Source of the DNA: Octopus sinensis
Lineage: Eukaryota
Assembly (NCBI RefSeq): GCF_006345805.1
Contig: NC_043007.1
Location: 35,278,001-35,342,000 of the forward strand
Length of the DNA stretch: 64,000 nucleotides
Reading direction: 5' to 3'
The position numbers were made by a program, and so were the translations under genes. The notes under the pieces are model-generated. The model had not been told where the DNA came from. It saw only the letters and a list, made by a program, of their open reading frames with translations, and made no database searches. Positions 10,978-17,023 of this stretch are shown one piece after another (positions within the stretch are counted from its first letter, which is position 1; every line of letters begins with the position of its first letter).

Positions 10978-11593
10978 TGTTTATAAAGATCATTTTTACG
11001 ATTGTGTAAATATTTTTTTACATAAACCAGTAAAACAGTGAGCTATAAATTTACAATGCAAGTGTTAATGCCTGTACAACTGTACAATACTTATAAGGTC
11101 TTCTTTGTTGGCGTTTTATCAAATAACAGCCACATTCACTGCTGATTACGTTGCCTGGGTAACGTAATCAAATTTAGGCTATTTAGAGCATTGTCTCTTG
11201 CGAAAATTCTGGGCAGTTAAAAGACTTCATTATATGGGTGTCCTTCATGATACATATCGAAAATTATATAATCATTAAACTGTTTTATTCTTTTGTGGTT
11301 TATCTTTATCGAAAATTTTTATCATTACGCATTTATTTTGAGGTACTTTTTTATTCTCGGGTCTTTTGTCCTATTCTACATTTCACTGGAATTTTTTTAT
11401 TTTTTAATTGATCCTTCCGATTTGTCCGTGAGAGATTTGTCCTGGCCTGGGGGGATAATGTCCTACACTCGTGTATACACGTTAAGCAATCTCTCTCAAC
11501 ACACACACACATCAGTGAACAAACAGTCAATTCTAGACATTTTTCAGTTAATCTAGTAGATACAGCGTCCAGCTGGTGTCGGTGATGGCGTAC

Positions 11594-11610
11594 CTAGTTT
11601 TTCTCCCCAT
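11594..11610 (-). CDS. Candidate first coding exon MGRKT(R), phase-2 donor AG|GTACGC
   Basis: ATG GGG AGA AAA ACT AG followed by GTACGC; identical mirror copy at 16926-16942 on +; no homology evidence. Confidence 0.25.
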
Positions 11611-11701
11611 AGTCTCTCTTTTTCTCTCTCTATTGTATAGTTATTGATTCACTTTACAGTCTGGTAGGCGCGCACTGTCAGTACACGACTAGAAAGCATG
11701 A

Positions 11702-11721
11702 TGGAAAATTCCATGACGTAA
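11702..11721. promoter_or_regulatory. Adjacent Rel/NF-kB- or NFAT5-like site (TGGAAAATTCCA) and CRE/bZIP-like site (TGACGTAA)
   Basis: Motif match only; lies in the conserved inverted block about 90-110 bp upstream of a candidate ATG; mirror copy 16815-16834. Confidence 0.35.
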
Positions 11722-12014
11722 TACATAGTTCTAAGCTCTACTTCCCCTTCTACAGCGAGTAAATAATGTCTGCCAAATAGCTTGCTTTTATCTCTACGCT
11801 TCTAATCAATTTTTCTTTTTCAAGTAGCTGTTCATTCGTTTATTTATTTTTTCCTTCCTTTATTTATTTCTGTCCTCCCTTCATGCAGCTTTGGTCTCTT
11901 ATGCTTTCATTTCACTTTTCCGTTTGATGGTGAAAATCTTGTTTTATTTCTCTTCTTTCATCGGTTCGTAAATGAAAGAGATGAGCTGGAGGGCCATAAA
12001 GAGACGACACAAGT

Positions 12015-12450
12015 ATGTATATATATATATATATGTATATATATATATATATATATATATATATATATATATATATATATATGTATATATATATATATGT
12101 ATATATATATATATGTATATATATATATATAATATATATATATATAATATATATATATATATATGCATATATATATATATATATATATTATATATATATA
12201 TATATATATATATATATATATATATATACATATATATATATATATATATATATGCATATATATATATATATGTATGATCTAACTATCGATCTATATATAT
12301 ATATACATATACATATACATGCATACATAGAGGGGACGAAACGTTTGCAGGCCTTATCTTTCTTTTTATTATATATATATATATATATATATATATATAT
12401 ATATATATATATATATATATATATATATATATATATATTATATATATATA
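12015..12450. repeat. (AT)n microsatellite blocks
   Basis: Direct inspection; source of YI-repeat pseudo-ORFs. Confidence 0.95.
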
Positions 12451-12800
12451 TGTTTGTTATTTGTGTTGTGTATTTTATTCCCATAGTTTGTTTTCAGGAG
12501 ACATCATCCTTTGTGCTTTTGGTAATTTTCCTTTCCCTTGTCGACACCAGTACAATTAAGGTGCGACTGTTGCATACGGTCGATAGAATCGTCTCTCTCA
12601 CAAGTGATTCCTGCTCGGTCAGAGAGACACTATCTTGTAACAATCATCAGTCATTAGAGAGCTTCTCTCCTTGTTGATATTGGCATGGTTAAGGAGTGCA
12701 TTATCGAATTGTCACCCAGCTGTTTCTCTGTCTCCCTGCCGTTTCTATCACATACAATCAACAAAATGTTTCTGTATCTGGTCATATCAGAAGAATTATA
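12450..12800. repeat. Diverged inner part of inverted duplication (partner ~15950-16340)
   Basis: Shared blocks e.g. rc CACTCCTTAACCATGCCAATATCAACAAGGAGAGAAGCTCTCTAAT vs CACTCCTTAATTATGTCAATATCAATTGGGAGACAAGCTCTCTAAT, and CCTTAATTGTACTGGTGTCG. Confidence 0.75.
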
Positions 12801-13287
12801 GAGGTTCTATAGTATGTAATCAATTTAATCTTTCTTTCTTTGCCAATAACAAACAGTTATACAACCAGTCTCTATCAACCAGTCAAGAGTCAACAGGAGG
12901 TTTTCACTCGTTTGCGAACTAACGTATTTGCAGTCGTGAATGTTAAGCCTTTGATCATAGGTCGGTTAGTTGAAGCCTTCGCTTGGCTTAAAATAGCAAT
13001 AATAATAACGACATCCGTGGACAGTTTCATTCCCTAGTGAGACCAGCGACAGTTGAGAAGCAATAGAATTCAAAGTGACAAGTTGCTGTCTTTGTTTGCA
13101 ATATCTAAACAGAAAGTAATAAGTCCATCAATAACAAGTGACGTTGTTGCTTTTGTTTAATCCTAGGCTGATCCTAATTGAGCAGAATTATATTCAAAGG
13201 CAGAAAGACACATTAGATAATGAAGTACTACATACATACATACATACATACATACATACATACATACATACATACATACATACATCA

Positions 13288-13874: not shown

Positions 13875-14135
13875 TAAGTTTTGGCCTATTAGGGCGGCGT
13901 TTCTCCTGGTTTCCACGACAAATAAATTATTGAGATTGAAATAATCCCTTTGACAGAATTTCGAAGGGATGTTTTGTTTACCGCCAATTACTCCTGGTAC
14001 TCATTTCAGTTGAGTAGACCAGAATTGCGTGTAATGAAGTACTTTGCTCAAGGACAGAATGCACCCTCCCCCTTCCTTTCCAGGAATCGAAAATGCAACC
14101 ACATTGTGAGTCCACCATACTAAGCACTGGCCCTT
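13875..14135 (-). mobile_element. Old CORE-type SINE (family D-related)
   Basis: rc contains CCTTGAGCAAAGTAC..CTACTCAACTGAAATGAGTACC, CORE-like; degenerate. Confidence 0.5.
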
Positions 14136-15291
14136 GCGCTTTTATCATACCAGGTATACAATGTATTTTAAAAAGCCGGGGTGGTCATGACTGGACACAT
14201 TTGATTGCAAGTCTACTGCAACATAGTAGTGGGATTACACAACAGCAATGTAATGGTGTGATTTGAGCCACGACAAAACCCTAGGATATTTTAAAAAAAA
14301 CGTGTGGAAATTCAATCTTCTTCTACACTCCACCAACTCAGTGTATTGTACCAATATAAGAAATCTTAACGTGAAATGAAAAAATAAACGTTTCGCTGGT
14401 GAAGTTTGATATGACCAAAACACATTCCAGAAGTTATCGCCCTTACTTGCTAAGATAAGATCAAAGAACTATTAGTCAGTGAGTTAAAATATTCCTCTCT
14501 TCACCAAATTAATATTATTCATTGGATTGTCCTCTTCGCTTTATCAATTGTGGTGGTATGATCATGACAGTCTGATTCGTACGCATGGCATGGTATTTAT
14601 TATTGGCAAATATTTCCTCTCATTACATCAGTTGCCAAGAGATCTAACATGAATGCTTTATTCATGTCGACGACGTCTCAAGTTAAATTTATTCGGTTAT
14701 AAATATCTTACGAACTTACAAGTTCTGACCAGAAATCTCGCGGGGATTTGTTGAAATCAACAGGGCTTGATTGTTGATTTGTTTAACGTAGAATCATTCC
14801 TTACAAATATGTGGTCTTGTGTCGATACTGAAAGGCAAAAGACGGATAGGGAATGCTGAATGACAAATTAAATATTTTGCAGGTTGTAAGTGATACTCTT
14901 GGAGAAACTAATGATACAATAATGATTGGGGAGAAGTGCCAAGGCACGCTATCAGCACGAATCCTAATAGTTAAATCACAAACGTTCTGCTCAGTGTAGT
15001 GAGCGAAAATTTCAATAATGATTACGCAGTGAGAAATAGGAAATGTCTTATATTTATTCTCTCTCACCTTGGTAACTACGGGCGACAACTCCAGACATAT
15101 TTCGGATTTATTAGACATCCACAGCGACGTATAACCATTTTCGTTCTTCCTAGATTAATAAGTGAATCACTGTTTCGATATACCATTATGTACACGCGTA
15201 AGTGTAAAAAAAAAATCTATTATAATGACTAGGGTAAATTACACAGGAATGCAACAATATTTAACCTAGAGTTGATGGCTTCTCTAGTTTG

Positions 15292-15591
15292 TGGAGGCAC
15301 ATGGCCTAGTGGTTAGAGCAGCAGACTCGCGGTCGAGGGAACGCGGGTTCGAATCTCAGACCGGGTGACGTGTGTGTTTATGAGCGAAACACCTAAGCTC
15401 CACGCGGCTCCGGCAGAAGGTAATGGCGAACTTCTGCTGACTCTTTCACCACAACTTTCTATCTTTCCTCCTGTATCTTACAGTTCACCTGCGACGGACC
15501 GGCGTCCCGTCCAGGTGGGGTACCTATACGCCAAGGAAACCGGGAAACTGGCCCTTACGAGCCAGGCATGGCTCGGGAAGGAACAAATAAC
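15292..15591 (+). mobile_element. SINE family C with 14-bp TSD
   Basis: TSD GCTTCTCTAGTTTG at 15278-15291 and 15592-15605; A box TGGCCTAGTGG, B box GGTTCGAATC. Confidence 0.92.
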
Positions 15592-15839
15592 GCTTCTCTA
15601 GTTTGATGTTGCTGTTTCTGTTGTTGTTTAAACTCTATCTCAGCCTTCATTCAGCACATCTATAATCATAGGCATACCAGCCATTCTCGTGTGCGCGCTT
15701 GTTTCAGCAGGAAGCTGGTGAAATATCCTAGTCATTGTTCCTATCTTGTGTTACTAAGGAGGAGGAAAAAAAATTCAAGTGGTTGTATGTCATACAATGC
15801 TCTCAATTACTGAAATGATATTGACAGGATGAGAAACAC

Positions 15840-16340
15840 TTTGTTCATTGTATGTGATAAGTGTTTCTATAACTGTGCCAGTCAGAAACATTTCGTTCAT
15901 AGTAAGAGATAGTGTGTCTCTAACTGTGCAGATATCAACAGGACAAGAGACATTTTGTTGATAGTGTTTCTATGACTGTTCTCGCATTACCAGGATAAGA
16001 AATGTTTTTACAGATTGTATGCGATAGTGTTTCTATAACTACGCAGGCATAGAGCAGGGAGACAAAACAGTTGAGTGAATATGAGAGAATTCACTCCTTA
16101 ATTATGTCAATATCAATTGGGAGACAAGCTCTCTAATCACCGATGATCACGTGAGAGTCTCTACAATTGAGGCAGATACCACCAGGGCGAGAACTGCTCT
16201 ATTGATTGTGTGCACTAGTCACTCCTTAATTGTACTGGTGTCGTCAACAAGGAAAAGAAAAACCATCGAACACAAAGACTTCGGTTTCTTCTGGAAACAA
16301 AGCATGAGAATAAAACGGAAAACAAAACAAGAAAATATAT
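15840..16340. repeat. Degenerate tandem subrepeats (GATAGTGTTTCTATAACTG) and inner right arm of inverted duplication
   Basis: At least four GATAGTGT(T/G)TCT motifs; reverse-complement similarity to 12450-12800. Confidence 0.65.
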
Positions 16341-16691
16341 TTATTATAAAGACAAAGAAAATGATTGTCATGCCATATCTCCACTCCTTTACGCCATTAT
16401 TTCCTTCTCTCTCTCTCGTTATGTACACGCACACATCCTGTATTTGTGAACGCGTGCGTGTATATGTATATATATATGTATATATACATACATATGCACA
16501 TTCACACAAATGGATGGATCTTTATCTCCCCCAGTCGATTCTCTTTCATTAGGAAATGATGAAAGAACAGGAATAAAACAAGATCTTGGCATCAAACAGA
16601 AGAGAAATGAATGCAAAAGCGACAAGACAGCGTGAAGATGAGGATGGAGGGAGGAATAAGAGGGAGAAAAAAAAGAAAGAAAGGAAAAGAG

Positions 16692-17023
16692 AATAAACGA
16701 ATGAACAGCTACTTGAAAAAGAAAAATTGATTAGAAGCGTAGAGATAAAAGCAAGCTATTTGGCAGACATTATTTACTCGCTGTAGAAGGGGAAGTAGAG
16801 CTTAGAACTATGTATTACGTCATGGAATTTTCCATCATGCTTTCTAGTCGTGTACTGACAGTGCGCGCCTACCAGACTGTAAAGTGAATCAATAACTATA
16901 CAATAGAGAGAGAAAGAGAGAGACTATGGGGAGAAAAACTAGGTACGCCATCACCGACACCAGCTGGACGCTGTATCTACTAGATTAACTGAAAAATGTC
17001 TAGAATTGACTGTTTGTTCACTG
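16692..17023. repeat. Right arm of 332-bp near-perfect inverted repeat
   Basis: See 11513-11844. Confidence 0.95.

Follow-up and report, generated by a model that had tools for sequence, protein, structure and literature searches.

A probable gene-conversion core within an ancient inverted duplication in repeat-rich octopus DNA

The 64-kb stretch of octopus DNA analysed here (the window) harbours an ancient inverted duplication that is specific to this locus and whose arms measure at least 1.3 kb. It is located in non-coding, repeat-rich DNA and holds a core that was probably homogenised by arm-to-arm gene conversion. The locus is regarded as an ordinary instance of a known phenomenon, and neither a gene nor a switch is indicated. 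The arms (11471-12860 and 17060-15857) lie in inverted orientation on one chromosome and are separated by a spacer of ~3 kb; the features of the locus are listed in Table 1.

Table 1. Features of the inverted duplication and of the simple repeats associated with it (window positions).
Feature	Position	Strand	Remarks
Left core copy	11513..11844	+	332 bp; 331/332 bases match the reverse complement of the right core
Right core copy, inverted	16692..17023	-	332 bp; single difference at 16916, which pairs with 11620
Outer stub, left (old homology)	11471..11512	+	Pairs with 17060-17024; identity 0.83, K2P 0.20 over 36 aligned bases
Left inner arm segment 1	11845..12010	+	Pairs with 16691-16519; identity 0.82, K2P 0.21, 35 gap columns
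Right inner arm segment 1	16519..16691	-	From alignment; two genomic copies, both here
Left inner arm segment 2 (older-looking)	12452..12740	+	Pairs with 16334-16053; BLAST 72%; identity 0.76, K2P 0.29
Right inner arm segment 2	16053..16334	-	From BLAST and alignment; two genomic copies, both here
Left inner arm segment 3 (barely detectable)	12741..12860	+	Pairs with ~16052-15857; BLAST 59-62%; identity 0.66, K2P 0.46, alignment uncertain
(TA)n/(CA)n microsatellite block, large	17033..17260		Just outside the right core; TRF 17137-17180; homology lost beyond
20-bp tandem repeat / T-rich low-complexity tract	11831..11881	+	Spans the inner boundary of the left core; period 20, 2.5 copies
(TA)~220 microsatellite	12014..12451		Interrupts the left arm; period 2, 220 copies
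Spacer	12861..15856		Without arm-to-arm homology and without coding signal

The preliminary description of the locus had reported a 332-bp inverted block differing by a single base, and both the block and its exact coordinates were confirmed by a repeat search and by alignment of the arms. The repeat search returned one inverted pair, 11499-11871/16665-17037, of 373 nt and 97% identity, while in the arm alignment the core itself has an identity of 0.997 and a K2P distance of 0.003. Every position x of one core pairs with position 28536-x of the other. The sole difference (T at 11620 versus C, read on the minus strand, at 16916) falls within a CT-rich run, and the perfect runs within the core measure ~107 and ~224 bp. 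The two cores stand in opposite orientation, 4.8 kb apart. The sequence of the window contains neither gaps nor Ns.

Because old homology was found on both sides of the core, the core must be an island within a duplication older than itself and not part of a duplication that is recent as a whole. In BLAST, 11472-12061 pairs with 17060-16461 at 86% overall and 12438-12739 pairs with 16349-16054 at 72%, and weak traces can be followed to ~12860/15763; DNA comparison of the outer flanks detected no homology outside the arms. The K2P distance climbs away from the core, from 0.003 to 0.20 in the outer stub and to 0.21, 0.29 and ~0.46 in the successive inner segments, a gradient based on short segments and gapped alignments, the last value of which is near the noise floor and close to that expected for a gapped alignment of unrelated DNA. 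The identity of 65-75% previously estimated by eye for the inner arms is thus roughly right, albeit a little low for inner segment 1 (0.82).

Chance is excluded as the source of the identity tract. When the 278 differences present in 1054 aligned columns were shuffled 20,000 times, the longest perfect run never exceeded 49 (222 observed) and the longest run with no more than one difference never exceeded 60 (330 observed), and the binomial probability of at least 331 matches in 332 positions at 75% identity is ~4e-40. By the GENECONV criterion, one of those published for detecting conversion between paralogs, the identity tract is longer than the divergence of the flanking paralogous sequence predicts. 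Gene conversion, or concerted evolution, which had been put forward in the preliminary description, is the best explanation of the sharp contrast between core and flanks seen in the alignment, the K2P distances and the shuffles. The GC content of the block (0.385) is not clearly above that of its flanks (0.33-0.42), and no footprint of GC-biased conversion is visible.

Both edges of the core coincide with length-variable, indel-prone simple repeats. The short (CA)n run of the left outer stub adjoins the core on the outer side. On the inner side, identity in the arm alignment collapses at 11845 with indels, and the tract found at this edge of the left core has as its counterpart in the right arm a T/C-rich tract of another length. 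The long (TA) microsatellite of the left arm is matched in the right arm by only ~110-170 bp of TA/CA-rich sequence (16350-16518), and a tandem repeat with a period of 52 bp occupies positions 15832-15929 of the right arm, opposite inner segment 3.

The mechanism envisaged is intrachromosomal gene conversion, in which homologous-recombination repair would copy one arm over the other, and the most likely dynamic would be that of a self-sustaining yet shrinking conversion domain. As conversion would require near-identity, it could persist only where identity is kept, and the extension of heteroduplex may be stopped by the heterologies at the edges, namely the (CA)n/(TA)n repeats on the outside and the T-rich 20-bp tandem repeat together with (TA)220 on the inside. 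Segments dropped from the conversion domain would afterwards diverge in a clock-like manner, and it is presumably because of this that divergence rises with distance from the core. Alternatively, a single recent conversion, arising for example from break repair at the fragile AT microsatellites, would leave the same core picture, and a one-off event and ongoing homogenisation are not separable by this pattern in one genome. Conversion between sequences that differ by ~20% is strongly disfavoured, as is known from homeologous recombination; a one-off recent event therefore seems less likely than continuous homogenisation. The long homogenisation of only 332 bp would be easier with selection removing variants, which would imply a function.

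A functional core, such as an enhancer or promoter, an exon of a non-coding RNA or a module bound by protein, both copies of which are kept identical by strong purifying selection with or without conversion, comes essentially to what the preliminary description proposed, and appears rather unlikely. A conversion domain of 332 bp lying beside segments with K2P distances of 0.2-0.46 would indeed persist more easily if variants were selected against, and the core is a unique sequence present in two copies only. Its sequence, however, contains stops in all six frames, the longest stop-to-stop stretch being 50 aa. The ATG at 11698, pointed out in the preliminary description, reads ATG ATG GAA AAT TCC ATG ACG TAA and runs into a stop after seven codons. 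Sub-threshold Rfam matches ('mir-297/466/3149') were obtained on TA/CA microsatellites and none within 11513-11844 or 16692-17023, no tRNA was found by ARAGORN, and the RNA folding of the core is no better than that of shuffled sequences (z = +1.35 and +1.37). No coding, RNA-family or structural signal offers a selective alternative. The form of the boundary also speaks against selection, as constraint usually tapers at the edges of an element, whereas here identity is lost over only a few bases where a simple repeat begins to intervene.

The regulatory traits that had been ascribed to the block are not distinctive either. Its CpG content equals the background, the observed/expected ratio being 0.83 for the block as compared with 0.85 for the window. 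In favour of a selected element, the dyad-symmetric TGGAAAATTCCA adjoins TGACGTAA in the core (11702-11721), and within the 64-kb window the exact GGAAAATTCC is confined to the core. Nevertheless, TGACGTAA and GGAAAATTCC were chosen post hoc and are near chance frequency in the window, where TGACGTAA occurs 5 times against 2.4 expected, a count reached in 14 of 100 shuffles. The proposal of a stress- or immune-inducible element has as its foundation two short motifs at background frequency.

The same block had been interpreted as the duplicated promoter/first exon of two divergently transcribed genes. This proposal is not supported, given the lack of an ORF in the core, the inner-arm indels that are not multiples of three and the outer flanks, where six-frame comparison yielded SINE/TE matches only and no paralogous exons. 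In addition, old homology extends inward from the block, and a unit starting at the block would be convergent rather than divergent. Host exons were not detected in the 64-kb window, which gave transposon fragments only; this, too, weighs against a functional core. In summary of these searches, no function is indicated and none is needed for the explanation.

The core occurs in exactly two copies in the 2.72-Gb genome, both of them at this locus, and the same applies to inner-arm segments 1 and 2, each with two copies. The search was sensitive enough to return thousands of candidates for true dispersed repeats and to detect local partners with 72-75% identity as well. The two genomic copies of the core and of the inner-arm pieces therefore point to a local duplication and not to a transposon, and a high-copy young repeat inserted twice, the case named beforehand as fatal to the conversion reading, was not what was found. 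In its overall shape (~5.5 kb, with terminal inverted repeats of ~330-370 bp and ends at ~11499 and 17037) the locus does resemble a foldback-, Galileo- or DIRS-like transposable element with long terminal inverted repeats, and other inverted pairs in the window, such as 50641-50912/51512-51248, derive from high-copy families. Such an element would nevertheless be extremely improbable here: besides the copy number, the interior shows no transposase, recombinase or reverse transcriptase domain (Pfam, E<=1), the outermost homology (11471/17060), the ends of which are blurred by microsatellites, displays no direct repeat that would represent a target-site duplication, and homology of graded divergence continues for ~1 kb inside the 'TIR', unlike in transposon terminal repeats. 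The transposon reading is effectively refuted by copy number. A hairpin-RNA (endo-siRNA) locus would call for a third copy of the arm as its target; none is present in the genome, in which only the two arms match.

Identical inverted cores may, as a by-product, serve as a substrate for inversion of the interior. A recombination switch, in which crossover between the cores inverts the 4.8-kb interior and both orientations consequently occur in the population or in somatic cells, is nonetheless highly unlikely. Inverted repeats of 332 bp with 99.7% identity at a distance of 4.8 kb are long enough for non-allelic homologous recombination, and the events that lead to conversion yield an inversion when they are resolved by crossover; in palindrome P6 of the human Y, conversion is accompanied by rare inversions (PMC3723533). 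On the other hand, the single assembly contains one orientation, neither a recombinase gene nor a specific site is present, and the interior offers nothing to be switched, as its ORFs have no Pfam match at E<=1. Apart from non-coding unique sequence, the interior consists of a young SINE at 13288-13701 (+), which has thousands of candidate copies at 94-97% identity, and a second dispersed repeat at 15291-15584; positions 13850-15290 are unique except for two short old repeat fragments. Occasional passive inversion of the interior is plausible, while a regulated switch is not indicated. It is likewise improbable that the core represents a selected cis-regulatory or non-coding-RNA module kept in two inverted copies by conversion and selection, or the substrate of a polymorphic or somatic 4.8-kb inversion, and thus a miniature autosomal 'functional palindrome'.

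An error of assembly or polishing, by which one core was wrongly homogenised or duplicated while in truth it differs as much as the neighbouring segments do, must also be considered, although it is very unlikely. Assembly errors are known to include short inverted segments of near-identity, and on either side of the core there are long microsatellites, which are the weakest places for long-read consensus and for read mapping. Against this, the core is collinear within genuine, diverged inverted homology on both sides, the two copies show one real difference, the window is uninterrupted, and polishing is unable to raise an identity of ~80% to 99.7% over 332 bp. Missed-adapter chimeras give rise to spacerless perfect palindromes, unlike the present locus with its 4.8-kb spacer and diverged inner arms.

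Under the gene-conversion reading, the locus illustrates neatly and on a small scale how concerted evolution can be restricted to one portion of an inverted duplication, the tract being bordered by simple repeats. Its significance as it stands is little, and it would gain in interest only if the core were conserved across octopods or transcriptionally active, or if the interior occurred in both orientations. Possible uses are as a textbook-style illustration of how a conversion domain erodes with time and as a marker locus for the rates of ectopic conversion and inversion in octopus populations.

Among the known systems, sex-chromosome palindromes (P1-P8 of the human Y and those of the primate X) are described as having an arm identity beyond the age of the duplication owing to intrachromosomal gene conversion, with inversion being rarer (PMC3723533, PMC8981503, PMC8600007). 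The octopus locus shares with them the inverted arms, the spacer and an identity too high for the age of the duplication. The palindromes, however, have arms of 9 kb to 1.45 Mb, which are homogenised over their full length and carry testis genes, whereas at the octopus locus, with its arms of at least 1.3 kb, homogenisation is limited to 332 bp and the rest has escaped; moreover, it has no gene shown and no pointer to a sex chromosome. Closer in scale are the C. elegans hsp16-1/hsp16-48 modules, an inverted repeat with a 416-bp spacer, and the adjacent inverted hsp70 pairs, for which conversion and not recent duplication was inferred (PMC3966223). They, too, are small local inverted duplications with an identical core and diverged flanks, but this core comprises expressed protein-coding genes with shared promoters, while that of the octopus is devoid of an ORF or a detectable RNA feature.

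In the human G-gamma and A-gamma globin genes, the conversion tract was reportedly found by Slightom et al. in 1980 to be bounded by a (TG)n tract in IVS2. There, as in the octopus, a simple repeat of variable length marks the end of the nearly identical tract shared by the paralogs; the globin genes, however, are direct repeats and coding, and the role of the octopus repeats as barriers or initiators is suggested by position only. Concerted-evolution theory for duplicates with sequence-dependent conversion, treated reportedly by Walsh (1987) and by Teshima and Innan (2004), is usually applied to whole genes, whereas we infer here a stepwise shrinkage along one pair of arms. Duplicates pass through a phase of concerted evolution and then diverge in a clock-like manner once conversion stops (PMC3924837). 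A graded divergence of 0.003, 0.2, 0.29 and 0.46 is what this theory would lead one to expect if different parts of the arms left the conversion domain at different times.

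A repeat search of the window recovered inverted-repeat arms at 11499-11871 and 16665-17037 (373 nt, 97% identity), and reading and alignment of both arms confirmed that they enclose a core of two copies which pair base for base, exactly at the coordinates assigned to them in the preliminary description. The sole mismatch (T at 11620 versus C at 16916, minus strand) falls within a CT run. Homology of lower identity, represented by an outer stub and three inner segments, extends beyond the core on both sides, and the arm-to-arm divergence, expressed as the Kimura distance K2P, rises with distance from the core. 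When the 278 differences were shuffled 20,000 times over the 1054 aligned columns, the longest perfect run reached at most 49 columns versus 222 observed, and the longest run with no more than one difference at most 60 versus 330. That an assembly or polishing artefact created the core is very unlikely, since it is collinear within genuine diverged homology and its copies differ at one base; the whole window is free of Ns. In addition, an 8-bp stem, TCTTTCAT...ATGAAAGA, is kept in both arms of inner 1 (11954-11979 and 16542-16566) around a 9-10-nt loop which has diverged between them (CGGTTCGTAA versus CATTTCCTA), and this small conserved hairpin may be a matter of chance at 82% identity.

Features of the inverted repeat, its spacer and its surroundings (window positions)
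Feature	Position	Partner in right arm	Properties
Outer stub	11471-11512	17060-17024	40 bp; identity 0.83; K2P 0.20
Core	11513-11844 (+)	17023-16692 (-)	identity 0.997; K2P 0.003
Inner 1	11845-12010	16691-16519	identity 0.82; K2P 0.21
Inner 2	12452-12740	16334-16053	72% by BLAST; segment identity 0.76; K2P 0.29
Inner 3	to ~12860	15857	faint traces; identity 0.66; K2P 0.46, near noise floor
Outer edge, left			(CA)n run
Outer edge, right	17033-17260		(TA/CA)n block, ~230 bp
Inner edge	11831-11881		20-bp tandem repeat/T-rich tract; length differs between arms
(TA)n tract	12014-12451		~220 units; mainly left arm; 170 bp inward of T-rich tract
Spacer	12861-15856		
Young SINE in spacer	13288-13701 (+)		94-97% identical to copies on many chromosomes
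Other copies of this SINE family	9609-10000 (-), 21209-21549, 23895-24289, 28942-29341, 36728-37127		
Second dispersed repeat in spacer	15291-15584		
zf-RVT	4813-5193		transposon fragment
Mos1 HTH/transposase	62045-62787		transposon fragment
107-aa open frame	32772-33092 (+)		protein-like composition; dispersed family, at least 76 genomic copies

Within the window's own 2.72-Gb assembly, where it lies at C11:35,278,001-35,342,000, the core, inner 1 and inner 2 each match these two places only. The search was sensitive enough, because local partners at 72-75% identity were recovered, and the positive controls, namely the spacer SINE and the inverted pair at 50.6-51.5 kb, returned thousands of candidates. 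Origin from a dispersed repeat or transposable element was thus rejected on genome-wide copy number; the preliminary description had named a high-copy young repeat as a finding that would refute it, but the core exists in two genomic copies. A transposon with long TIRs is left with almost negligible probability, since it fits neither the copy number nor the coding capacity nor the gradation of homology inside the arms. The control pair itself (50641-50912 and 51248-51512; 95% identity, spacer ~336 bp) is part of a dispersed family, for which at least 2100 candidate copies match at 95-96% identity; probably it represents either a foldback/MITE-like element or two insertions, one nested in the other.

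An abrupt-edged island of near-identity, with older collinear homology on both sides and a locus-specific structure, forms a pattern classically taken as the mark of gene conversion between paralogous copies, which supports the conversion proposed in the preliminary description. No footprint of GC-biased conversion is visible. Both core edges adjoin indel-prone simple sequence; further inward, the ~220-unit (TA)n tract, which has a far shorter TA/CA-rich stretch as its right-arm counterpart, is likely a fragile or hairpin-forming site. Simple repeats at both edges, taken together with divergence rising with distance from the core, suggest a shrinking conversion domain. This domain would formerly have spanned more of the arms and would have contracted stepwise since, with the repeats probably acting as barriers: heterologies may have stopped heteroduplex extension, and each segment excluded from the domain would have diverged clock-like afterwards, as set out for the end of concerted evolution (PMC3924837). 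One recent repair event, for instance after breakage at the fragile AT microsatellites, would leave a core that looks the same; however, it needs recombination between sequences diverged by ~20%, which is disfavoured. Continuous gene conversion is therefore the likelier of the two. While the arms, their divergence and the core edges are directly observed, conversion, its continuity and the part of the repeats as barriers are inferred from them.

Selection on a functional element would help to account for the persistence of so short a domain, but no positive evidence of it was found and we regard it as unlikely. A coding exon was rejected on the grounds of closed frames (all six in the core, the longest stop-to-stop stretch being 50 aa), of interior and flanking ORFs without a Pfam match, and of inner-arm indels which, in the arm alignment, are not multiples of three. 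The ATG pointed out earlier reads ATG ATG GAA AAT TCC ATG ACG TAA, a bacterial-style ORF caller returned trivial ORFs only from the block, and a search for orthologs with an 87-aa ORF across the left junction gave zero candidates in the protein databases, from which this genome's raw ORFs are evidently absent. An RNA gene was likewise rejected: an E-value-based Rfam scan covering 9-20 kb yielded only miRNA-family noise below gathering scores, with the sub-threshold matches located on TA/CA microsatellites outside the core, ARAGORN detected no tRNA, and for neither strand of the core was the predicted folding superior to that of shuffled sequence (z = +1.35 and +1.37).

The core carries TGGAAAATTCCA/TGACGTAA sites. 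Five TGACGTAA occurrences were counted versus 2.4 expected, and ten of GGAAAATTCC with at most one mismatch versus 4.5 expected, two of the ten being the two arms; at frequencies this near chance expectation, the motifs were not considered significant. The core has a CpG o/e of 0.83, compared with 0.85 for the window. Hence, neither the CpG content nor the motifs emphasised in the preliminary description are distinctive, and its proposal of a duplicated promoter/first exon belonging to a divergently transcribed and possibly stress- or immune-inducible pair is not borne out, as the exon is absent, the motifs are at chance level and the flanks lack paralogous gene bodies. Moreover, the old homology extends from the core into the interior, which would make any units that have their start in the core convergent.

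No host exon was identified in the 64-kb window, and its protein-like ORFs are all transposon fragments. The family of the 107-aa open frame, which is without a Pfam match and includes many copies with stops, presumably encodes an uncharacterised transposon protein. SINE copies are found throughout the window, and DNA-level and six-frame comparison of the outer flanks of the arms revealed SINE/TE matches only, with no paralogous exons. The spacer SINE, flanked by microsatellites (TACA, AGAC), represents a very high-copy family (>6000 first-look candidates); the spacer also has ~1.4 kb of mostly unique, non-coding sequence. A regulated inversion switch, for which the geometry and nothing beyond it speaks, is highly improbable, given that the interior contains nothing to switch. 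Flip-flop of the interior as a passive by-product is mechanistically possible, because crossover is an alternative outcome of the same recombination.

Several other repeats were observed in the window. A 135-bp near-perfect self-palindrome (39650-39784, 99% to its own reverse complement) adjoins a segment, 39718-39878, that recurs at 51445-51604 (97%). A 200-bp direct duplication (10152-10351 and 10777-10977, 95%) surrounds a 426-bp element (10351-10776) recurring at 56592-57018 (90%) and partly at 58395-58607; the arrangement resembles either an insertion bordered by direct repeats of unusual length or a composite repeat. Pyrimidine-rich, strongly strand-asymmetric low-complexity blocks (18600-19500 and 20340-20840; GC skew to -0.82), composed of CCT-rich tandem repeats of 17, 33 and 36 bp and long ACC/ACT-type runs, yield long spurious proline/threonine-rich ORFs. 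Similarly, degenerate tetranucleotide repeats of the (TGTA/CATA/TACG) type form kilobase-scale arrays (54600-56000 and 60000-60900), in which both strands contain long but spurious 'YVCMYV' ORFs.

The locus is best explained as an ordinary case of a well-known process, specific to this site, and would gain interest if comparative, population or expression data showed constraint, activity or inversion. The literature search returned nothing relevant on octopus-specific cases and no useful match on microsatellite-bounded tracts. In sex-chromosome palindromes, arm-to-arm conversion keeps identity >99.9% (PMC3723533, PMC8981503). In the case of the inverted hsp16 modules of C. elegans, conversion was deduced by the same logic as here (PMC3966223), and it is on this logic that GENECONV rests as well.
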